Source of the DNA: Pelomyxa schiedti
Lineage: Eukaryota > Protista > Evosea
Direction of reading: 5' to 3'
Assembly: GCA_020536535.1 (NCBI GenBank)
Contig: JAHLWZ010000113.1
Coordinates: 62,001 to 126,000 of the forward strand
Length of the DNA: 64,000 bases
Shown: positions 6,069 to 60,500 of the stretch, one piece after another
Layout: each line of letters begins with the position of its first letter
Position numbering within the stretch: the first letter of the stretch is position 1
Made by a program: the position numbers and the translations under genes
Notes under the pieces: model-generated
What the model saw: only the letters and a program-made list of their open reading frames with translations
Told to the model about the DNA's origin: nothing
Databases searched by the model: none

Positions 6069-8192
6069 TTAAGGCAGAAGGCTTTGTATTCTTTTCAGGA
6101 ATTCTACCATTGTGGCACCGAAGAAGGGAACATCAGAGAGAGCGGCGTTTGTGAACACCAGGCCGAGAAACTCACTCGTTGTTATGCATTCACCCGTTGT
6201 GTTGTTGCTTGCACTTGTGGTTGTTGTTGTGCTTGTGTTCGTGGTTTGTGCTGCTTCAGAAACAAGCGAAATGTGGGGCACATTTCGCTCATGGATTGGC
6301 AACAGAATTGAACACACTGTCTCATTATTGGAATACAGATCAATAGCTTCCTGCACACTCTGGTGGGTTGCCACTGGAACCAGGAATGATGCACACCGAT
6401 CAACAGGTAGGAAAATGAGGGCGCCGCACACGAGCATAGCCTTCCCTGCACTGGGTCTTATGTGAGGATCCCTCTCCAAGAGGTACCCCACCAGGGGGCT
6501 CAGGATGTGGTGTCTGTGATTTGGGGGAACTTGATGTTGCCCAAGGCTTAGGTTGAGAATGAGGTTAGTGTCGAGGTTGTTGTTGTGGTCGAACGGGTGC
6601 ATGCCTGTGATGAGCTCATATACAACACAACCAGCTGCCCACACATCATTCTTTTCCAAGCACAGTGTGGATGGTGACTGTGGAGGTTGTATGACTTCTG
6701 GGGAGCGGTTTTTTGGGCAACCGTCAAGGGATTGTGATTGGCCTTGTGGAATGCAGCCCAATGAATCACACTCTCTCACAGTGCCAAAGTCACACAGCAC
6801 CCAGAGGTTACCATGGATCCTTGACCTAGAAACTGCCAGTATGTTGCTCAGCTTGATGTCACCATGGTAGCAGTTGTTGCCATTGAGGTGTGTGCAGGCA
6901 CACATTAGACAAAATGTAAGCTCAATTGCCTGTTGTGACAGCGAAAATCTGGAGATCTGGCCTGTCAGAAACATCTCGGCATTGCCCAAACCGAGCTCCT
7001 GCACGATATATGTAGTGCGGGAGAAAACAGGTGTTGGATTGGGGTCCTTGCATCCTTCCACAAAGTTGCCGCTGTCATCCACAATGCAATAGTTTTGCCG
7101 AATATCTGCTGGTATTAGATCTAAGAGCGATTTTGAGTGGAAGAAGCTGTAAATGTTGCACAGGCTCCAGTGTGGGAAGTTTTTGACGAATATGTACTCT
7201 GCGGAAAACCACTTATTAAGGCTCTCAGTACTGTTGCCTGCCGAGTAGTTGTACATCATTTTGAGTGCCACTTGGCTGTTAAAATGGTCCTGAACTGGAA
7301 CCTTGTTCACACACCCATTACTCCCCTTTCCAAGGCACACTGCTCTGCTGATATCAAGGTCATTCATCCCAATTGTTCCAAGGTTTCCCTTGTCAAATCG
7401 GGAGAATGCATGAGAATGAAGAACAGGTTCTGGTTGGGCTGGGTTCTCTGTTGCCCAGTGGTCACTCCTTTCGTTGTAGTTTTTGCTTTCCTCTTTTGCT
7501 TCCATGTCACTTGCTCTGAGAAACCTTTCTAGGTTGTTGTCTTGGCGCAGCTTAGGAAATGCCCCAGCTAAGGAATCAAGGGAGCCCCTGGCTATAGAAA
7601 TGGAACCGTGGGGAATTGCAACAGCAGGAGCGTGCTGAATAAAATTCCTGAAGTCTGCAGAACCGGCAAAAGCACGGTGGTCACAATTGGGTGAATCCCA
7701 CGATTGAAAAAAAGGAAAGTAGTAAAAATAGGATGTGGGTGGGAGGCCTTCTTGCAGATTATTTTGGATCGCACTTTTGTTATCTCTGCTGGCACTCATC
7801 ACTGCTGCTGAAGCTTTGTTTATCACAATGCTGTAATTGGATCCAATGGCAGGAACAGCCTGGTGCAAAAGAGACATCATGGCGACGTCACCAGGCTGCA
7901 CACGCACCGACATCAGATTTACAACAAAAACTACTCGGAAAATTCCTCCTTGGTTGAGTGCCTCCAGTACCGCCTGCTGTTGCTGCCTCTCAACACCAAG
8001 AGCTGGAGTGTCAATGTACATTTTGCCATCCACATCAGTATACCGCTCACACGTTGTCCATCCAGTGCTGATCCAACTACCGAGGCGGAAAGGCGATCCC
8101 AGCGGGCCTTGAACAACGGCGCTCAGCAAAGCGCTCTTGCCCACTCCCAAAGGACCCATGAAGATCGTGGTAATGGCAGGGGGATCCGACAT
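6069..8192 (-). CDS. AIG1/GIMAP-like P-loop GTPase fused to a Ser/Thr protein kinase (non-RD, PINK1-like features)
   Basis: Single intronless ORF, ATG at 8192 (MSDPP). GTPase motifs GPLGVGKS, DTPA, FRVVFVV, YSIVINK. Kinase motifs LGKGSNG, VALK, HGDIKLSN, DFG, SPE, DVWAAG. Confidence 0.88.
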   Translation of the reverse strand: MSDPPAITTIFMGPLGVGKSALLSAVVQGPLGSPFRLGSWISTGWTTCERYTDVDGKMYIDTPALGVERQQQQAVLEALNQGGIFRVVFVVNLMSVRVQPGDVAMMSLLHQAVPAIGSNYSIVINKASAAVMSASRDNKSAIQNNLQEGLPPTSYFYYFPFFQSWDSPNCDHRAFAGSADFRNFIQHAPAVAIPHGSISIARGSLDSLAGAFPKLRQDNNLERFLRASDMEAKEESKNYNERSDHWATENPAQPEPVLHSHAFSRFDKGNLGTIGMNDLDISRAVCLGKGSNGCVNKVPVQDHFNSQVALKMMYNYSAGNSTESLNKWFSAEYIFVKNFPHWSLCNIYSFFHSKSLLDLIPADIRQNYCIVDDSGNFVEGCKDPNPTPVFSRTTYIVQELGLGNAEMFLTGQISRFSLSQQAIELTFCLMCACTHLNGNNCYHGDIKLSNILAVSRSRIHGNLWVLCDFGTVRECDSLGCIPQGQSQSLDGCPKNRSPEVIQPPQSPSTLCLEKNDVWAAGCVVYELITGMHPFDHNNNLDTNLILNLSLGQHQVPPNHRHHILSPLVGYLLERDPHIRPSAGKAMLVCGALIFLPVDRCASFLVPVATHQSVQEAIDLYSNNETVCSILLPIHERNVPHISLVSEAAQTTNTSTTTTTSASNNTTGECITTSEFLGLVFTNAALSDVPFFGATMVEFLKRIQSLLP

Positions 8193-10361
8193 ATTCGGTG
8201 ATGAAAGGGAATTTCGGCCCTTGTGCAAACGGGTTGATTTTCACGCACTGCGTTAGACAGGATTGTATTCCACCTCACCTGACACAACAAGGGAAAGGAC
8301 CGGCACGTCACTGCCCACAGTCCAGCTGTCCTGGCGTCTTGGATGCACAATAAGGGAAAAAAAACACTGTCCTTCTGCTAACAGCTGGAGTCAGTTCGGG
8401 TCCTGCACTGATGCTGGGAGGCACTATTCCTACATATCTTCGTGGGTCTCATGGTAGTTGGTAAGGGTCAGGTCCTCTCTGTTGGTTACCCTCTCTGACC
8501 TGTGGATCAAATCGGCTATAGTTCTATCAGTCGCCGTGACATCACCACACACTGTTTAGAACTATCCTAAAGGATTAGAAGTTATAGAAACTCGAGAACG
8601 ATCTTTGTTCGCTTTACCGACTTCTCTTTTGACATCTATAACGGTTTGTCTTACAGTATGCTACTGTCTAATCGTATGGCTATGGTCCAATCTTCTTTAT
8701 ACGGAGCCTCGTTGGAATTTGACTCGAAAGAAAAACAAGAAGTGAGGGGGTCCGGAAAAAAATCGTTTCACAGGCAAAGGGACATCATGGAATCGTAAGG
8801 CTGTACACGCGATGACCTCAGCGTGACAGCAAATACTACTTGGAAAATTCCTCCTTGGTGGAGTTGTGGTCTATCAGCACCAAAAGCGGGTGTGTCATGG
8901 AATGCCGCGTTGCTGCCCACATCAGTATACTGCTCACACGTTGTCAATCCAGGGAATCCGGTCCCGCTCGGGAAAGGTGCAGGCGACCCGGAGGGAGTCG
9001 CAAAATTGTGTACAGCAAAGCACTCTTGCCAGCTTGTGAATGACAATAAAAATCGTTTTAAGGAAGGAACCGCTTGGACTCGACATCGTCGATACTATCA
9101 CATGCAAAAGGATTAAATTTTTACGATTTTTTTCCCCGAAATGGGGAAGAAAAAAGAGCCTGGTCCTGACCATAGACATACATGACATCTCCTGGGTGAA
9201 CTGTTCTTTCCTGTCTGGGAGTGGTACCTTGCCAGCTGTATGTCAGCATCTCAGGCCCATTGCGTGCCCATTCATGGGTTCCTCCCTTTGGAATGTTAAA
9301 GCAGCTGTCTTCCCCTGTGGAATCACTGGTTTTTGTGAGGTGGCAGGATACCATATTGGCTCCGCGATTCACGACAATTACATGGTGTGACTTATTCAAT
9401 TCATGTGCGGTCCTTCGGGTTATGTTTTAAAAGACCGCAACTGATGTGGTGACTGCACACCTAAGGGTTTCCGTTCTTTGGTTGCTGTTTTTGGTCTCTT
9501 CCTCAAATTCTTGTTTCACCTCATCGGCTCTTCGGCTGTGAAGAATGAGACTAATATTTAATGAAAATGAAGCATGCCTGTGTTTACTGTCCCCCGTGGC
9601 GCAGAACAGTGCCAGTTGCAAGTCATATTCTTTTTTTAGAGCTGCGGCTCTTTCTCTTTGTATTTTTGCCACCAGTTCCTGAAGCAACTGTTCCATAATT
9701 GACTGATTCATCCGCTCAGTCCATAACGTACTTTCAAGTGCATCAACAAGTGACTCTCGCCCATCTGGGAGGAAGGAAGAAATGGAACCGTGGGGAATTG
9801 CAACAGCAGGAGCGTGCTGAATAAAATTCCTGAAGTCTGCAGAACCGGCAAAAGCACGGTGGTCACAATTGGGTGAATCCCACGATTGAACAAAAGGAAA
9901 GTAGTAAAAATAAGATGTGGGTGGGAGGCCTTCTTGCAGCTTATTTTGGATCGCACTTTTGTTATCTCTGCTGGCACTCATCACTGCTGGTGAAGCTTTG
10001 TTTATCACAATGCTGTAATTGGATCCAATGGCAGGAACAGCCTGGTGCAAAAGAGACATCATGGCGATGTCACCAGGCTGCACACGCGCCGACATCAGCG
10101 TGACAACAAAAACTACTCGGAAAATTCCTCCTTGGTTGAGTGCCTCCAGTACCGCCTGCTGTTGCTGCCTCTCAACACCAAGAGCAGGCGCGTCAATGTA
10201 CATGTTGCCATCCACATCAGTATACCGCTCACACGTTGTTGTCAATTCGGTGCCGGTCGATTTACCAGGGCGGAAGGGAGTACCCGTAGGGACTGGGAAA
10301 ATTGTGGCCAGCAAAGCACTCGTTCCCACCCCCGAGGGTCCCATGAAGATCGTGGTAATGG
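7597..10361 (-). repeat. Near-identical ~580-bp direct repeat pair (7597-8177 and 9779-10361) covering the GTPase domain
   Basis: Long identical stretches (e.g. gaaatggaaccgtggggaattgcaacagcaggagcgtgctgaataaaattcctgaagtctgcagaacc) are present in both copies. Identity stops abruptly right after the GTPase domain. Confidence 0.92.
8768..9090 (-). pseudogene. Frameshifted remnant of the same AIG1-like GTPase
   Basis: TIFI.. / AGKSALL / GLTTCEQYTDV..DTPAFG..QGGIFQVVFAVTL..RVQP..MMSL lie in three different frames, with an internal deletion relative to the paralogues and a premature stop at 8768. Confidence 0.8.
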
Positions 10362-10395
10362 GAGGGTCCGAGCCAAGCAGCGGGGGGTCCGACAT
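9121..10395 (-). CDS. AIG1-like pseudo-GTPase + coiled coil + small C-terminal beta-rich domain
   Basis: ATG at 10395. P-loop GPSGVGTS lacks the Lys and G3 is DAPA. Coiled coil EQLLQELVAKIQRERAAALKKE. A 48-nt GT-AG intron at 9413-9460 removes the stop at 9427 and joins ETLR to TAHELNKSHHVIVVNRG..EWARNG, stop at 9121. Confidence 0.75.
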
Positions 10396-10509
10396 CAACG
10401 CCCCTGTGTCTTCCACTCAATTTTTTTTTTTTTTGCTCCATCACATACACCAAGTGAACGAAACTCGTCAAAAAAAAGTTGGTTTTCCGTCTCTGAAGGA
10501 GGGGATGTT

Positions 10510-12793
10510 CTAAGGGATGGATGTAGGGTGCACAGCAGTTGTCGACGGTGCGCAAGTGGTTGTGACGTTGCTGGAGCTCCTTGCTTCTACTACTTCTTCT
10601 TGCAATTCAAGCATCTGGTCTACAGCAGTGTTGGCTGTGGGTCCAACTATTTCCCAGACCACAGGCACTGGATCCACAATCAAGGAACTTGGAGGGAGAT
10701 CCACAACCGGAGCTCGCTTGGTGAACTCTTTGAAGTCGCTGGGAAGCAAATTGAACGCATCTACATTATCCACATCCTCCCAGGCCTCAATGAATGGTAA
10801 GAAATAAACACTTGATGTTGGAGGTAAACTCTGTGGCAGCTGTGCTATTAATGACTCCTTTCCTCCTGGGGTGTTGTCAAATAGGCCATGAGGGGTCCTG
10901 TTAACGATGATAGAGTAATTCCCTTTGATCATTGGAACAGCCTTGAGCACAGAGCTAAGTATAGCTTTGTCTTCCATTCGGATGTGGCCTGCTTCAAGAA
11001 CTACAACAAAGATCAGCTTGGATATTCCTGAAATCATATGACTGATTATGTCATCCATGTTTGGCTCATAGAATCCCGGTGTATCAACAAACCAGAACCC
11101 TTCATTATCCAACTTTTGCTGGCAGGTAGTAGTCAGACCAGTGCCAAACGAAAGGCCCGAGGGAAACGGTAAAGGACAACCAGGTCCCCGTGAGAAAATT
11201 GAATTCAGCAAAGTGCTCTTACCAACACCAGGGCTCCCCATCATAATGGTGGTGTGCCACTGTGTACCGTTGCATTGGGGTCTGTTGTTCACAATCTGTG
11301 TTTTGTTTGTTATCACAAGTTATCCAAAGTGATAGATAGTTCAGGGAATGAACCTCTGATTCCAGCCTAAAAAGGCCTCTGTCGGGGTGTGACATGATCT
11401 GGGACTTGTAAGGTGCAATGACAGGTTTAAATGGGTCATCCATGGGTGTCCCCCAATTCAAGGCGTCTGCAAGACTCTCCGAGAAGCCCCATGGGTCGAA
11501 GAAGGGCAGATTATGTGCCTTCAGCATAGAAGCAGCTGGAGCATTCCCAGGGAGGAGACTGGAAATCGGGGAAGAAATGTAGTCATGCAGCTGTAGCACC
11601 TTAACTCGTGTCCTATGCTCCACAGAGTCACGGAGTGAGGCTAGATCAGAGAAAAAAAAGGACTTTCCTGAGCCAGATCTTCCAATCTTGTGGTGGGAGT
11701 AAATGGATGAGCTATCATATTTGTCACCAAAGGAACATACAGGAATGTCGAAATCTGGCTGGGCTAGATTTGGCGACCTCATTCTTTCTGCTCCAAACCA
11801 CGCTCTAATTGCAACCTCTTTTGATGATGTACCATGTGTGGACTTGAAAACAGTCCAATTTCTTAATGGAGGCAAAAGACAAGCTGGCATCCATATTGTT
11901 AAGTTCAAATAAAAGAACTTGGAAGAGTGATGCACACATTCTGTTTGGTTGTCGAGTTTCTGTTGTACTTCATGTCGTTCTTGTTCACCTCGATTCATCC
12001 ACCCGGTCGGTGAAGCAACATGCACCTAATTCTGGATTAGGAAACATTAAGAAGTTCGCAAATTATGCCTTCTCCTCTGGAAGGTTATTTTCCTTCTGCT
12101 CTGTAAGCTTAGCTTGGTTCTTTCCCAGTGTAGGAACCACTTTTTCCACACAATAATTATTTGCCGCAAGTGCTTCTTCAACCTTTTTCTCAGAAACTTC
12201 GGGAGGATACCTGCCAGTATGTAAGCAGAAGTAATGGGTATGAAATAGACGAACGACGCCACTGCCGTCAAGAAAGCTGACGGTTGCAGCAATTTCTGAG
12301 TCGATTGACTCAATCGGTTGGCCGTGGTCGAGCCACCATCAAACGATTTCGCATCACGTGCGAAATCACCCCACCCATGGAACATATCGTCCTTCCACTC
12401 CCCAACGTAGCTCCCTCCATCCCTGTACAGCATTCTCCCATTCCCATTCTTCTTGCCGTGGTCGAACATGCGACGGTAGATGTCGCTCCAGCCATCAGGT
12501 GACCTCCATGTGCCACGCCCATGCCACTTGTCCCCGTCCAACTCACCCTCATACACTGCCACACGTTCCCCGCCCATTTGCCTCCTTTGGACGCCCCACC
12601 CATCCTGTGGTGTTTGATTCCACTCGCCATCCTTGACTTCACCCTTCTTGTAGTACCACGTTGGCTTCGTCAAACTGCCCAGTCCACTCCACCGACCCTC
12701 GTACCACATGTTGACACCTGGACCGTGCTTATTTGCGTCACCCCACTCGCCGTCGTAGGTGTCGCTTTGAAACTTGCAGCCAACAACCTTCAT
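10510..12793 (-). CDS. MORN repeats - CUE/UBA-like helical domain - unknown domain - intact AIG1-like GTPase (predicted single spliced gene)
   Basis: MORN motifs YDGEW..HGPG, YEGELDGDKWHGRG, YVGEWKDDMFHGWG. Frame-consistent introns 12211-12254 (GT-AG), 12026-12068 (GC-AG) and 11296-11353 (GT-AG) link these to the GTPase motifs GSPGVGKST, GTGLT, DTPG, LIFVVVLEAG, YSIIVNR. The start codon is uncertain. Confidence 0.65.
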
Positions 12794-12994
12794 CGTGGGT
12801 TTTGACAATGCACTAGCTGGCTCGTAATGTTGTGATTATGCGAAGGTGAACAAAAAAATCCGATTCTGAGTACCTAAATATAGTTGCAGACAACTCGAAA
12901 AACCCAACTTAGACACCAAGTTTAATGTTGGCAGCTGTGGCAAGGGTTCAATGCACACTCCCCCATCTGTTATTCATTGAGAAAGGGGAAAACA

Positions 12995-14411
12995 TCAGTG
13001 TTTATTGGAACAGTGGCTGTGTTTTGTGGCTGGAGGTGAGGGTCTTTCTGTGGTTGGTGAGGTGGTGTCGGCTCCGGCGTCTTTGTTCCTGGGCCTTTTG
13101 CTGGGAAGTGAGACTGCTGTTTTGTTGGGGTAGTCATCATCAGGGGCAGGCGGATGTTTGTTGCCGGTGGTGTCAGTCTTGAAGTACACCCTCTTCTTCT
13201 TCTTGTGCTTTGTGGGCACAGTGTTTGGCTTTGAGGGGACTGTTGTTGATGACGAGGATGAGGTGGTGGATGTTGATGATGATGAGGGTTGGGGGCTGGC
13301 TTTGTGCTTTGTTGTGGGGGTGGTTGAGTCGTGGGAATGATGGGCCTTTTGGGAACTCTTTTGCTGTGGACTTTCTTCTTTTTCAGTGTTTGTGATCCCT
13401 GGTCCTATGAAATGTGAGTTGTTGTGGAGGTTACTGGCAGATTTTACCTGGGTCACCTGGCTTTTTCTTTGCTGGGGACTCTTCATCTTCACTTTCGCCA
13501 TCTGGGGAGGATTCAGAGTCTTCACTATCTTCACTGTGGGGTTTTTTGTCACAAATGCTGGCGTTTTTGAAAGCAGGTGTTTCCAGCAGTGTGAGCATCT
13601 TGTCATGCGATAAAAAGTAGACTGTCTCACTGTAACCATCCTGTATCAGTGTTACCACCGAGTTTGTGAATTCCAACGTAGCTATAAAAGAATAAACTCA
13701 CAGGGCCAGAATCCCATTGTGCTAATTTGTATTCTTCAGGAATGAGAGAGTGGTAAATGAGAGACGTGTCACTATCATCATCATCCTCATCAGAACCTTG
13801 ATTCAGAATTTCAGCTACCACCCCTGTGGGGCTTCCACTAACAAAGTAGGTTGTGAAGAGCTGTTTTTGATAGTAAGTGTCAGTTTAGTCATAGTGGGAA
13901 ATACAGAGTGCAAGTTGAGCTAGTGAGACAAGACAGATTGTGAGGAGAGTTGTACAGTAAATAGAAAGCTCTGGAAACAAACAGTCCACTACTAATCAAA
14001 GTGAGTTGCAAGAATGGGAAGATGCATGTTCCACAAGGAAATGAAACAGTTTAGAACAAGAAACAAAGGCTCCATTGTAGGGAGGTGACGTTGCAAATGC
14101 CATGTAACCAACTTCAAAGTTGCAAAGAGTGAGATAGAAATGGATACATTCATCAAATTACAAATGAATCTGTTAAATCCAGAGTGGACAAACTTGTTTT
14201 TGTTCACTGCTTGGAAATTCTAAAAAAAAAAAAATTGAAAAAGAATGCAAAGGAGAATTGATGTTGAAGAATCTTGATCACAAACAATGGAATTATGATC
14301 AGAAACAGACACCAACTGTCCCACTTTTTCAGAAACAGATGAGAGGTTCTTTGGGTTTTTTTCTGTAACACACCCCCACAACTTCTTTCCATCCTGTGCC
14401 ACATTCTCCAC
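12995..14411 (-). pseudogene. Fragmented hypothetical gene with acidic and Ser/Thr/Lys-rich C-terminus (probably decayed)
   Basis: Protein-like pieces (GSDEDDDDSD; SEDSEDSESSPDGESEDEE; STSTTSSSSSTT..KHKKKKR) lie in different frames, and I could not join them with clean introns. Confidence 0.35.
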
Positions 14412-14589: not shown

Positions 14590-15540
14590 GTCATTTATAG
14601 GAGCATACTAGAAAGCATCCCCCTCAATCTGGAACCAAGCCCTCTTGGTTGTAACCAACATGAAACCATGGGCCCATGTATGCAAAGTCACTCCAACTTG
14701 CTGGTATGGCTGGGATTCACCAGAGACAGTAAAACACATCCTAAACAGGTGCAAAAATAACTCTGGCACGAACTGAAACTGCACCCAATGAAGACCCTAA
14801 ACATAATTCCGAACTCCCCAGACTCAGCCATTTGTTGTAGGGCTATATAATATCCACAGTACCAGGCACCACCAATCATAGCAGAAACCAATCACAGCAT
14901 ACTCCACCCATAACAGACACCAGCCAACCAACCCACCATCTCAACCCCCTCTTGTGTACTTCCACAAAGTACACGAACTCAGCCTTGCTCACAAGGCTCT
15001 GAAGTCTGGTGCACTTTAGCAGGATTGGAGAGACTGAGGACTGAGCCGAATCTGGACCATTACCAGAATGAGACAGCGAAGGTAATGATCAGCACACAGT
15101 GCAGCTGGGCGCACAAATACAGCAACAAGAACGCGGCAGGCGGTTTTGATTATCCATTTGAACATCACAGCCTTTTAACCCAATCACACAACCACTCTGC
15201 GAGATTTTACACACTCCCTTTTTATCCCCTTACAACAATGACCAAACAAACAAGAGAACCCTTTATTCTCTTCACTCTCACTCGTTTTCTTCCTCTGTGG
15301 GACTTATTCTCGAGCCCACAGAAGCTAACACTCTGTATTGTGTAAACACTATTTAGTTAAGACACAGTTGTTAAGCAAACACATAACACATGAGAACAGT
15401 AACACCATTCAGCCCACAACATCCCTCTCCTAGACCACCACTCTTACATATTTACTTTCCTTGGTGACTTTTCCCCTACAACCTAACATCCACACCTTGT
15501 GACTTTGCCTTGACTACAACAATGTCTCTGAAACTTCACC
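14590..15540 (+). mobile_element. Possible degenerate 3' relic of a non-LTR retrotransposon (CCHC zinc knuckle)
   Basis: 14699-14752 translates C-W-Y-G-W-D-S-P-E-T-V-K-H-I-L-N-R-C, like the CRxGCxxxETxxHILxxC knuckle of non-LTR ORF2. It is flanked by stops in CpG-poor DNA. Boundaries are approximate. Confidence 0.4.
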
Positions 15541-15693
15541 CTTTCTTGGAGCTGTTTTGTGGAGCATTCAGCTGAGCACTGTGAGAGACCCTGGGCCCAG
15601 ACGTCACTTTTATTGAGTTGGCTGAAAAAAAAAAACACCGGACCGCAGACCCAGAGCACCGGACATTCCTGTCTGTTGAATCAACACAATTTG

Positions 15694-18600
15694 ATGGATC
15701 GAGGAATGCGAGGGGGCCAGTACACGGGTGTGTTCGTTGTTTGACAGATCTCTCCAACAAACACGTACCGTTTCTTATGATGATGATGTAGTGAGCACAG
15801 TCGCGGGGACGGGTATTAGCGGGCGTTTGGATGGCAGGTGCTATACCGCGCAATTTTGCTCGCCTAGTGGTGTTGCGTTGGACTGGGATGGCAATATTTT
15901 CGCAACCTCTAGTAATAGTGTGAGGGTGATCACTGTTTCAGGTTCACAACTCTTATGCGTTTTAGTATGATTGTAATCTATGCTGTTTGCAATCGGTTTT
16001 TGTTTTGTTGATTGTTTGTAGTGTGGGCGCTTTCCTACTACGGGAATTTCACTACAAATAATTGAAATCAACAAAAGGAGATGTTATGACAATTGGATGT
16101 GGAACTGCTGGGCATTTAGATGGCAATGGTACTGACGCTATGTTCAATGAACCATATGGAATAGCTGTTGATTTTTTGGGAAATCTTTTAGTTTCCGATG
16201 TGGCCAATCATTGCATCAGAAAGATCACACCACAAGGTAGCGAAAGAAACCTCGTTAATCAATACTCAATAGTCTTCGATATTAGGTGTTGTAAGCACAA
16301 TTGCTGGACAAGGTGGCAAGAAGGGATTTGTTGATGGGCCTTCTCAAAATGCCAGATTCCAAAGCCCCTATGACATCGCTGTCGATATTTATGGAACAAT
16401 TTTTGTGGCGGATTATGGAAATCACGCAATCAGGGCTATTTACTCCCAAGGTTCAAATGGAGGCCTGCTCTCACATTGACAACACCATGTTCTTGGCTTT
16501 GCTATACACCCTCCACTTCATCAGACAACGTGTTGATTACATGTACACTAGGTTATGTTGTCACAATTGGGGGAAACGGTAAGGCTGGCTTTGCTGATGG
16601 CCAGGGTTCAAAAACACTCTTCTCCTCACCGAGCAGTATTGCTCTTGATGGAGCCTCAAATATTTATGTGACTGACTCTGGGAATTTTCGAATAAGAAAG
16701 ATCACCCAAGATGGTAATAGTGGCCGTAATCAAACCAATTAATCCTCAACGTCTCTACAGGTACAGTCAGCACAGTCGCTGGCAGTATTTTTGGATTTGC
16801 TGATGGCCAGGCATCATTTTCCAAATTTGGATCCACAAGTGGAATTGCAGTTGATGTACTCGGTAATATCTATATAGCAGATTACTCAAATCATAAAATT
16901 AGAATGATATCTCAGACTGGTACTCAATTTCTGGTTATACCATTCCTTTTTATAAAAATGCATAGGAATGGTTAGTACAATTGCTGGAACTGGGAGTGGA
17001 GGTTTCTCAGATGGACTGGGTTCCACTGCTTCGTTTAACTATCCATATGGTCTCGCAGTGGATTTTTGTGGAAACGTCTACGTTGGGGACTGTGCAAACA
17101 ACCGCATCCGCAAACTAGTGCCTCCCACACCCTTGAATTACAAAAGCCCTAAGTATCTGCAACATTAATATATGCAATCCTTTCTATATCTCAGTCCTTT
17201 CCTAGAATTGTTTCCGACAAGGTGCGACAAGTCTTTTTCACTGGGTCTGCCAAGCAAATTCAACAGATACCGCAAGAAGAGTTATACTCATACGCCTTAC
17301 TTGATGTCATCCTCTCAACTACTAAGTTTCACGAAGGCAGTTCCGAAGTGCAGCGTGCTGTTAAGGCAATAGAGTGCCTGAAAAAGAGAGCCTCACCTCA
17401 AACAGAAATGATGCATGAGTGGTTACTTGGTGAGCTGCCCGGATGGATGGGATTTCAATCACTTGGTGTTGCATGCATGACTGGGCACTTAAAAATTGTT
17501 TCTGCTATACTTGATTGTGACCCCGACGGGTCTTTACACGGAAGTGACACATCTAGGTGTCTTTCATGTGGCTTGTCAAAAGTTTGTGAAAGTATGCAAG
17601 CACAAAATCTGTTTTTTTGCGGGTACATTGTGGAAAGGGTAGGAACTTACTCTAGCTAGGCTCTTCTCTCTGCCGAATGATAATAGAGCGCACTGCACAT
17701 GGGACGCTCTTCCTGGATTCTTGTACTATCGACAAAATTGCGTGCAATTATCCTGAATTGGTTCTATCACAAGACTCCCTTGCCAGTCAACTGACTCGTG
17801 AAACTCTTGCAAAACTCGCAACTTTATATCCCAGGGTCTTACTTAGCTATCCTTCATATGCAATCAAAGCACCTCCAGAAACTTTTATCCTGGCCATAAA
17901 ACAGCATGACCACGACGGTGAGTTCTCTACGGAACTCATTTCAGCTGGTGTTACAGTTGAGAAACCTAGTCTTCTTTATGATGCTCTCTCCGACGTTCTC
18001 ACATCTTCTGTTGTGGATAGTCTGCTTTTGGCTCGTTCCACTGTCACGAAGGAAAGCAAGACAACTACCAAGCCGTCTGTAACCACGAAAACGAGTCAAA
18101 TTGCTCCAACTTCTAAAACCCCTGTCAATAAAAGCGCAAAAAAGACTGCTAAGTCTCTGGGCACTACTAAGAGCTCAGTCCCACTCAGTACTAGTGCTCC
18201 TACCAAAACCACTTCCTCCCCTGCCAAAACTGGTACCTCCCCCACCAAGGCAAGTTCCAGGAAACAAGTTCAACACCCTGCCGATACTTCGTCCAGTACG
18301 AGTTGCAGTCCACTGCCCACTGAACCTCTTTCCAATGATAAGACTAGTAAGACTTGCACAGAAGCTCCCAGCGGTGCTAGTACCTCAACTCTAAGCAGTG
18401 CTCATACTCCAGACCAGTCTACAGTATCTGTTTATGTCGATGGGGACAAGACACCTGCCACCTTGGTTATCAGTTCCACTGATACTTTCGGCTCTGTCAA
18501 AAGCAAAATCGAGGTCTGCTGTGTTATTCCTTTCCTTGCTTACTCAAATGTTCCTCAAACAGGAAGAAATTCTGGACCCAGGAAAGCATGTTGGCAAGAT

Positions 18601-57582: not shown

Positions 57583-60500
57583 ATGCCAGCCAAAAGGATG
57601 CGAGGAGGCTCCCTGCAGCAGTACCTGTGTGAGCTTCTCGTGTGGCACACCTCGACACGCCTGGATCTTAAAAAAAAAAATGTGTTCCTCTGATGTCTTT
57701 GTTCTTTCGAGAATCATCACAATGATCTCAATTTCTTTTTGGCTTGTAATGATCTATGAGCAGCGGTGTGGTTCGTAGTAAAGCGGGGACGGTGTTAGCG
57801 GAGAAGTTCTGTTTGTGTTTGGATCTAATCCTTCGGGTTTGTTTGATTTGCCGAGTACGTGTCATTAATGCGCAGCACTGCAATTAGAATGCAGATGTCT
57901 GCAAGGAGGAGTCTTTTTGGTCCGACTTCTTCATGTTGAAAGTAAATTCTGGATATATTCAATCCGTGCTTTCTCGTATGTCACCTGACGTGTTGGCGGC
58001 AAATAAGGTTTTTCTTCCATTGCTTTCCGCTATTTCGGTATTCCTAAATTCTTGGCCAAGGCACACATCAACATGTTATTTTCCAAATGCTGCGATATGG
58101 TGAATAAAAGTGACAGTACACGGAGCCTGCGTGCATTAGAGGTTCCATTTCAGCATACTTTGGAGTTAGAATTTATTTTTCACTTAAATTTTTTGTGACA
58201 ACAAAAACTTCAGCTCCTCTGTCCCCTGTTTAACACTATGTTGCATCTCAGCTTTGCTTCAGCCCAGTTTGGTTACAGTGCAATCGATGTTATTTGTGGG
58301 TCACATATAAACTCCTTCAATGTTTATCCCTTTTTCCCCTACCAATAGTAAAGTATTTCACTAGAGCCTTCTACTTTCACTTAAGAAGACCTTGGACCAT
58401 ACCTACACAGTGGTGCAAAATCCTATTGATGGTGACCACTCAACCTAATACTTCTCTTTAACATTTATTTAGACCTGTCCGCGAAGTTGAAACCATTGTG
58501 TCTAAAGTTATTACTTACGGTATTTTATAGTCTCGCCTTTTTAAAAACTCAGGGTACACCTTTAGATAATACAAGCATCTAACAACTTGAACCAAAATAC
58601 TCTGGTTCAGTATCTAATGCTTGTGGATATGTTCAGTAGTGTTATATCGGTACCATGATTTCACGATAGCTCTTTATGGAATTTACACATTCTAGACAAT
58701 TAAAACTGCCACATTTGGGCCTCCATGTGAAGAAAATTTTTTAATTCTTTGTTCCTCAGTTGCAGTAGCTGCAGCTCTTACTAACTACCGTCGCTATGAA
58801 TCAACAAACCCCTACCTTGTACAACTGCAAACACTATCAGATCCTCTGGCCTTGCGGGTACCTTTTTTGCCAATTACCTTCCATTGGTTTCATTAACCAC
58901 CATAAAGGCTGTTGCACACTCTTTCACAATGGCTTTTGATTCTGTGAATAGGTAAATATAATTCCAATTTAGTTCGCTTCTTTTCACTTAATCTGGCTCC
59001 AAGGCTACATGTTCTTACCTACAGCAATTCTAGCCCTTTTTACTCTTGGATATTTGGATCGACTCCCGCCTCCATCAAGATTACACCAACTCTTTCCACA
59101 TCTACCGAAACATTACCCACTACTCAAAGTACCACAACAACCTCCACTCCACAGTCCGCACCTACTAGTACTACACCTGCCGAAACTGTCCTCACAGTAA
59201 AGGATGAACAAAGCCTGCTTGCCTTTGTTGGTTCATCTTTGTTACTCCTGCGTGATTTGTTGCAATCCAACCCACACTTCCCTGACACACTGGTCTCCTT
59301 TGAAGGTGACTTTTTCNNNNNNNNNNNNNNNNNNNNNNNNNNNNNNNNNNNNNNNNNNNNNNNNNNNNNNNNNNNNNNNNNNNNNNNNNNNNNNNNNNNN
59401 NNNNNNNNNNNNNNNNAGTAAAGGATGAACAAAGCCTGCTTGCCTTTGTTGGTTCATCTTTGTTACTCCTGCGTGATTTGTTGCAATCCAACCCACACTT
59501 CCCTGACACACTGGTCTCCTTTGAAGGTGACTTTTTCCCAATAGTAGTGCAGCTCCTAACTGTCACTACAGCCGCACTGCTTGGACAAGTTGTGCAATTC
59601 TTGAGTTTTCTTACTGTTACAGCTCCCTCAAACGTGACTCTTTCTTATACACAAATATGTTACGTTGTTCTTTTGGGAGCAATGAAGGCAGTCCCGCAGT
59701 TATTTTTGTCTGAGAGTCAACCTCTTGACCTATTTTCATTGGTCTTCTTCACATTCGTCTTCATTATACGGCGTTGAAAATCTTGAATAATGTTAAATTA
59801 ATATTAATTCAAAAACTTTTTCCTCACAAGACCCATAGAACAAATCTAAAATTTACGTGGAAGCTATACCAGGGGCTACAATTCTATGCAAACATGTATT
59901 AATACTCTGTAGAAAAAGACTATGGACTGTATTCAATGTAATGAGTATCCCACTTTACTTGTATGTAGGGGTTGGGGCACCAAAACAACCACAGAAAATC
60001 CTTATAAAAAATGGTAACAAATCATAGAATAAATGAACTTTTTAAAAAAAAAAAAGGAAACTTCTATCACTTCTACAAATCATCGTTTCCACTCTGAGAG
60101 AACAGCATTCCACAATCGATTTCGACTGGAGAACTCTTCTTGAAAGGCTATTTCTTTTGATGAAGTTTTTTTCTAGTGAAGAAATTTTCTCTCAACCCAA
60201 CTCATTGTCTGTAATCATTAAGGTACTAGAGTTGAAAAATTACATGTGTGACTGATCTTTTTAGATTGTGAATCTTATCAACTACTTCATTACATATGGC
60301 GATTCATTTCTTAGGGATGCTGAGTACGATTGTTTGTTCTACGAAATTGTGCGAAATTCATCGATAATAAATTCCATGTCACGTTCAGGCAAGTGCTCAA
60401 ACTCCTTGATCCATGCAGATAATAACAACTGAGTAGTGCAAAGTCACGGGAAAAATGAAGACCTACTTCTTGGAGTTTCTTTTGCCAATATGCGTAGTAT

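Follow-up and report, generated by a model that had tools for sequence, protein, structure and literature searches.

The window analysed here, 64,000 nucleotides of the amoeba Pelomyxa schiedti, corresponds to positions 62001-126000 of contig JAHLWZ010000113.1 (C113), part of a 52.4-Mb, 5337-contig assembly of short reads from single-cell libraries. Between positions 6069 and 12793 of the window, the minus strand carries four copies of one GTPase domain (G domain) in the same orientation, and they resemble one another much more than chance would allow (tblastn E 1e-28 to 1e-32). An earlier note, made from the sequence alone, had claimed four co-oriented copies of one P-loop GTPase in 6.7 kb, and the limits it gave hold. 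The copies are of two types, A and B, and each stands in its own architecture:

10510-12793, minus strand: copy 1, A-type, 676 residues, deposited as Pelo_1353 (exon sum and deposited protein).
12793-12255, 12210-12069, 12025-11938, 11883-11741, 11686-11354 and 11295-10510, minus strand: exons of copy 1 (length and exon joins match Pelo_1353).
12375-12793, minus strand: MORN repeats of a large Pelomyxa family, closest kin 60% identical (Pfam MORN).
12098-12300, minus strand: CUE/UBA-like fragment shared with a single gene on contig C170 (nucleotide comparison).
11354-11810, minus strand: 'X', the N-terminal half of a second GTPase-like family, from P-loop GRSGSGKS to DPWG (family comparison).
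10681-11259, minus strand: G domain of copy 1, GKST and DTPG kept (alignment and model).
9121-10395, minus strand: copy 2, B-type, 394 residues (reading frames and exon sum).
10395-9578, 9535-9461 and 9412-9121, minus strand: exons of copy 2 (reading frames).
9781-10362, minus strand: degenerate G domain of copy 2, with GTS and DAPA (alignment).
9121-9412, minus strand: C-terminal, all-beta domain of copy 2, about 85 residues (ratio of nonsynonymous to synonymous substitution rates, dN/dS, 0.14-0.19).
8770-9086, minus strand: copy 3, a truncated B-type pseudogene with two frameshifts (frame comparison).
8278-8760, no strand assigned: dispersed repeat that separates copies 3 and 4 and encloses a second repeat at 8503-8655 (repeat search).
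6069-8198, minus strand: copy 4, B-type G domain plus kinase, 709 residues, intronless (open frame and Pfam).
7596-8177, minus strand: B-type G domain of copy 4, with GKS and DTPA (alignment).

Copy 1 is a mosaic. The order MORN, CUE-like, X and GTPase had been read correctly in the earlier note and belongs to a single gene of six exons, in which 'X' can now be named as half of another P-loop GTPase family, ending before the core strand and G4 of its domain. In the donor family this domain is complete and fused to VWA at eight other loci, with an intron at the same place. Searches of Pfam, NCBIfam and PDB with the donor P-loop domain gave no match; the family may be IFI44-like. The genome holds at least eight genes joining VWA to this unnamed P-loop GTPase-like domain, some as tandem pairs (C482, C164, C392, C262, C359 and C1357). 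The CUE-like piece, tentatively so labelled from its motif and without a match in a Pfam search, is 80% identical in nucleotides over 206 bp to the gene on C170. Because this likeness takes in an intron, it means that the piece was copied at the DNA level.

Four of the five introns of copy 1 have RNA support. RNA contigs carry the joints 11295-11354, 11686-11741 and 11883-11938, and the loose end of an RNA contig fits a GC-AG intron at 12026-12068; since the joint 11295-11354 is among these, splicing connects the half-GTPase 'X' with the G exon. The sole support for the fifth intron (12211-12254) is a matching intron-like stretch in the C170 gene. No RNA contig from the two shallow RNA runs covers the MORN part, which is weak evidence either way. 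The G domain itself contains both GKST and DTPG, as the earlier note had said, but is not fully intact. Of 32 near-invariant positions, defined as at least 90% conserved in 112 outside family members (each of which keeps at least 29; the set is biased to strong matches), it retains 24. The arginine of the conserved box, at the arginine-finger position, has become histidine, and the helix motif after G3 is lost. A helix follows the G domain in the predicted model.

The description of copy 2 as a GTPase lacking the P-loop lysine, followed by a coiled coil and a small beta domain, stands, the coiled coil as a putative one. Its P-loop reads GPSGVGTS, with threonine for lysine, its G3 motif is DAPA, and 20 of the 32 positions are kept. 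The tail after the G domain, helical and charged, is the putative coiled coil. Both introns match those in the transcript of a paralogue on contig C1255, from which the spliced RNA contig over copy 2 derives (18 of 19 variant letters). The deposited model Pelo_1352 differs from ours, with copy 2 running on into copy 3. The beta domain is the most constrained part of the array and also occurs behind a G domain on C804; it has no Pfam or NCBIfam match, its model is of low confidence (predicted local distance difference test, pLDDT, 58; best Z 4.7), its look-alikes in fungi and bacteria are unnamed, and its Atlas matches (0.90-0.92) are unnamed small proteins. Copy 3, rightly called a frameshifted pseudogene, begins with an ATG at 9086 and is cut off near 8770, where the nested repeats start. 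A terminal inverted repeat was looked for in these repeats (8278-8760) and none was found.

Copy 4 joins a G domain to a kinase (Pfam Pkinase, 86 bits) in a single open frame, 8198-6069, with a linker of about 60 residues. The GTPase-kinase fusion claimed for it is therefore real, with the correction that this copy, too, has lost the G3 glycine; 22 of the 32 positions are kept. The kinase is of the non-RD Ser/Thr type and possesses all catalytic motifs (GKGSNG, VALK, E, HGDIKLSN, DFG, SPE and R), and is hence predicted to be active. It comes from a family that has expanded in Pelomyxa to about 35 or more loci. The kinases nearest to it (63-66%) sit behind ankyrin repeats, and elsewhere one member is in frame with actin (C663) and one lies directly behind Sel1 repeats. 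Among proteins of 395-1258 residues, a search of limited reach for other G-kinase fusions of the G-domain clade returned only Pelo_1352, and about 210 fetched G-domain homologues contained no kinase motif. No Roc or COR match lies ahead of the kinase, so copy 4 is not a Roco protein.

Genome-wide, the G domain occurs at about 12 loci: five on C113, four on C1255 and one each on C1219, C34, C476 and C804. This census, proposed in the earlier note, also bore out the variety of fused partners. Other Pelomyxa copies carry ankyrin, tail-collar-like, astacin-adjacent, or zinc-finger and URGCP-like GTPase parts. On C476 (L020:5521-7989) and C804 (L021:3400-5013) a phage tail-collar-like motif precedes the G domain (weak Pfam match, C804), and the C476 copy has the frame of an astacin-like metalloprotease immediately upstream. 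The canonical member of the genome, on C1219, has all motifs and a CaaX end and groups with two Mastigella proteins. Its gene (L017:833-5751) encodes about 1,650 residues comprising zinc fingers, a URGCP/VLIG-like GTPase, the canonical G domain, a coiled coil and the CaaX end, so that one chain holds two different GTPases.

The array on C1255 has the order A1, B1, A2, B2. Across its A1-B1 block, identity to window 9119-11289 is 82%; degenerate Sel1-like repeats lie upstream of A1 and two other P-loop pieces upstream of A2. A and B form two clades (Shimodaira-Hasegawa-like approximate likelihood ratio test 97 each), and A precedes B in all three places. C1255-A1 keeps the conserved-box arginine. 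Deposited proteins are Pelo_1352 and Pelo_1353 on a 130,547-bp contig and Pelo_17101, Pelo_17103 and Pelo_17104 on a 10,779-bp contig. The first 581 bp of C1255 are 94-97% identical to window 15553-16166, within an NHL-repeat gene in the same orientation relative to the array, but between this gene and the array the DNA of C113 and C1255 is entirely different and the arrays themselves agree at only 82%. C1255 could thus represent either a diverged haplotype or a segmental duplication. One RNA contig over window 10836-11254 is mostly window-like but has C1255 letters at 8 sites in 10870-10905; it may reflect an assembly-graph switch, a template switch or a recombinant allele.

Copies 2 and 4 are 91.5% identical over 589 bp of DNA, with a marked gradient: identity between their G domains is 96-100% in the 3' part and drops to 65-84% towards the 5' end, where C1255-B1 is closer to copy 4 than copy 2 is. 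Because the two are alike in the 3' part and diverged at the 5' end, the gradient points to gene conversion or recombination among copies. Such likeness could also suggest an assembly or haplotype artefact, which the earlier note had named as fatal to its own reading: a stretch of about 300 bp is 98% identical between copies 2 and 4, the libraries are from single cells and assembled from short reads, and the start of C1255 matches window 15675-16166 at 97%. Logan contigs from two DNA runs (one sample, probably the same source as the assembly) nevertheless span the 3' ends of the repeated G sequence, at 6851-7625 and 9443-9807. Because both 3' junctions are spanned, the G-kinase fusion exists as DNA and is no assembly join. 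The copies moreover differ by 9-65% and in architecture, and the left flank is single-copy. An artefact is hence very improbable, and could amount to no more than an exchange of 5' halves between copies 2 and 4.

The G domain is built like a GIMAP. Its predicted model (pLDDT 88) matches GIMAP7 with Z 14.1 (root-mean-square deviation 3.6, 188 aligned), Toc33 with Z 12.7 and Era with Z 12.6, and the Foldseek ranking is led by Toc34, closely followed by septin and GIMAP. The modelled fold is thus closest to GIMAP7, Toc34 and septins (the paraseptin superclade), by a modest margin over Era and other TRAFAC GTPases. The family motif FVxTLExGR aligns with the conserved box VLQLGR of GIMAP7, its arginine being 96% conserved. 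G1 GxxxxGKS, the G2 threonine and G3 DxPG are all present in copy 1, whereas copies 2 (GTS/DAPA) and 4 (DTPA) depart from G3; in all B-type copies the invariant G3 glycine is replaced by alanine or the motif is lost. Changes of the G3 glycine, the P-loop lysine and the conserved-box arginine are expected to impair the switch or catalysis.

Strict membership of the AIG1/GIMAP type, as distinct from the fold, is not supported. Pfam gives copy 1 an MMR_HSR1 match and 21.5-22.3 bits for AIG1 (PF04548), under the gathering score of 27, and gives copies 2 and 4 no AIG1 match, although several outside relatives exceed the cut-off (36-46 bits). The IAN motif RxxxFNN at G5, part of the GIMAP definition (PMC7053062), is present in none of the 112 outside family members. 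A real AIG1 domain (47 bits) is fused to a RING finger on C775 (L039:955-2133) and falls far outside the G-domain clade in a quick tree. Because IAN is absent and the genome's AIG1 gene lies outside the clade, the array G domain is no GIMAP by that definition. Nor does it fall with the housekeeping GTPases Era, EngA, EngB and RsgA, an outcome the earlier note had seen as refuting it; all scores are far below the NCBIfam equivalog cut-offs.

The clade to which the G domain belongs is large and takes in red algae, oomycetes and fungi. A profile search returned 811 clusters at E<1e-30 (50%-identity representatives), with named members from Gracilaria, Agarophyton, Timspurckia, Pythium, Allomyces, Mastigella eilhardi and Amoebophilus asiaticus and weaker matches from Mortierellaceae. 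Among 208 fetched clade proteins, 43 have a CaaX-like C-terminus and 22 contain two to four G domains. Partner domains in relatives include U-box, RING, Sel1, TPR, LRR, MORN and jacalin, and clade genes form tandem clusters also in Gracilaria and on one metagenome contig. We found no family model for the clade in Pfam or NCBIfam and no functional study. Two scans of viral contigs gave no relative; in bacterial genomes, where both scans were pattern-limited, none was found by profile and one Cytophagales metagenome-assembled genome by an Amoebophilus query. Recent transfer from Amoebophilus receives no support from the quick tree, in which the Pelomyxa copies lie near Mastigella sequences.

Selection was estimated with transition bias allowed for (kappa about 2.3), as uncorrected Nei-Gojobori estimates overstated constraint. 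In whole-domain comparisons, dN/dS of the G domains is 0.5-0.9 overall and about 0.55-0.7 for copies 1 and 2 against their C1255 paralogues (p 0.005-0.07), and no comparison exceeds 1. The check among paralogues suggested in the earlier note therefore yields purifying selection, weak on the G domains. The cargo domains are constrained: dN/dS is near 0.17 in the beta domain (p<0.001) and near 0.33 in the kinase.

We consider it probable that the array is a birth-and-death cluster of degenerate paraseptin-like scaffolds that has gained fragments of other genes, domain shuffling being widespread in this genome. Canonical members of the clade, such as those on C1219 and in Mastigella, red algae and Amoebophilus, are probably G domains that sit at membranes and pair through the conserved-box arginine, with a coiled coil behind them and often a CaaX end. 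In Pelomyxa, the diverged subfamilies A and B may have been duplicated as an A-then-B unit, to which DNA-level recombination would have attached fragments (MORN, CUE-like, half VWA-GTPase, Sel1, ankyrin and the kinase cassette) while gene conversion or re-duplication kept the 3' part of the G domain alike. Judged by their residue losses, the array copies probably work poorly as GTPases or not at all. Where they act in the cell at all, they would do so as nucleotide-binding or dimerising scaffolds carrying cargo, the beta domain or an active kinase, the others decaying. The birth-and-death turnover that the earlier note had proposed is supported, as is the variety of partners across the genome. 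The sensor, decoy and kinase-effector roles it proposed are not supported. Because the kinase family is fused equally freely to ankyrin and actin, or lies directly behind Sel1 repeats, shuffling appears to be a genome-wide habit and not special to this GTPase.

Several points weigh against this explanation. Once transition bias is allowed for, selection on the G domains is borderline, and for copy 4 it is not significant (dN/dS 0.6-0.86, p 0.09-0.6). Expression evidence is shallow: the RNA check, over 6851-12850, bore out four copy 1 introns, but no RNA contig of the two runs lies on 6851-8250, part of copy 4, or on the MORN part. The tree separating A from B is a quick version. An unlikely alternative is that the locus is largely neutral debris in a repeat-rich, duplication-prone region where fragments gather, are transcribed by chance and decay; this may apply to 'X' and to the G domain of copy 4. 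In keeping with it, one copy is a pseudogene, nested repeats and short duplicated segments lie around the array, 'X' is half a domain, the copy 4 G-domain ratios are indistinguishable from 1, and no RNA contig falls on 6851-8250. Yet copies 1, 2 and 4 are open despite a synonymous divergence (dS) of 0.2-0.3 from paralogues, the beta domain and kinase are clearly constrained, and copy 1 is spliced in frame.

The earlier note had seen here a candidate immunity or symbiont-control locus, and this, too, is rather unlikely. A and B would form hetero-dimers, A carrying integrated host-protein baits and B an output (beta domain or kinase), much as in paired nucleotide-binding leucine-rich-repeat receptors (NLRs). 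The conserved A-then-B order with variable N-termini on A would fit, as would the four-source mosaic, in frame across five introns, four with RNA support, and the U-box, RING, LRR, TPR, Sel1 or jacalin domains of relatives. Losses are complementary in that the arginine is absent from copy 1 but present in B copies, which lack the G3 glycine; C1255-A1, however, keeps its arginine, and the complementarity is not constant. In septins, losing the arginine finger after a duplication has been associated with hetero-oligomers (PMC10996617), snail GIMAP/AIG genes respond to infection (PMC7053062) and the host houses three endosymbionts (PMC10579272). On the other hand, no dN/dS exceeds 1, the kinase family exchanges partners no less freely and the G-domain family numbers only about 12 copies. 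A more specific form appears distinctly improbable: an obligate A-B hetero-dimer of half-disabled paraseptin GTPases, A with captured baits and B with beta domain or kinase, with the C113 and C1255 arrays as hyper-divergent alleles or duplicates of one surveillance locus governing endosymbionts or invaders.

Roco GTPase-kinases combine a G domain with a kinase, and paired NLRs are paired genes with variable integrated domains. By analogy, copy 4 resembles the former and the array, with its paired genes and variable added domains, the latter; it differs in having no Roc/COR, NB-ARC or LRR, in its head-to-tail genes and in a kinase from a Pelomyxa-expanded family. Human GIMAP7, Toc34 and septins are the best structural matches and share the conserved-box GR, but are only 13-18% identical to the array G domain, which has no IAN; in the array, histidine stands at the arginine of copy 1 and the G3 glycine is missing from B copies. 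Members of the GIMAP/Toc/septin group are described as using arginine fingers, and septins as losing them after duplication (PMC10996617). GIMAP-type GTPase effectors are mentioned for Amoebophilus asiaticus (PMC3417536, PMC3482391), and we infer that this clade is meant, with the Amoebophilus protein ACE05497.1, which scores E 5e-88 against the array profile. The Amoebophilus proteins differ in being bacterial, secreted and intact in their motifs, and the Pelomyxa copies are not nested with them.

The closest precedent is in the snail Biomphalaria glabrata, whose AIG genes lie in tandem arrays of 19 architectures with partial copies, coiled coils, many partners including a kinase, and suggested gene conversion; AIG-kinase fusions are also reported in salmon and fungi (PMC7053062). 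The earlier note knew of no described system with this layout, but the layout is already known, with similar clusters in animals. The snail genes have complete AIG1 domains with IAN and an N-terminal kinase, whereas the Pelomyxa genes belong to a sister clade that lacks IAN, their catalytic motifs are degenerate, the kinase is C-terminal and the copies number only about 12. We found no description of the IAN-less clade as a family, of the degenerate A/B pair or of the RNA-supported mosaic gene.

Repeats and duplicates also occur elsewhere in the window. A repeat of about 380 bp at 14953-15331 has at least 40 genome copies (84-95% identical), short segments at 12949-13785, 16406-16867 and 18190-18599 are duplicated on C67 (96%) and C676 (91-92%), and 59196-59537 holds a perfect 121-bp direct repeat, its copies 221 bp apart.

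Were the immune explanation true, the array would offer a testable candidate for microbe sensing in an amoeba that houses three endosymbionts, one in which a GTPase underlies an integrated-decoy logic. If it is a birth-and-death cluster, as is likelier, it is a clear example of new genes built from fragments of four families with introns kept. The array also points to a large, unnamed GIMAP-like clade, with hundreds of clusters in protists, algae, fungi and an amoebal symbiont.

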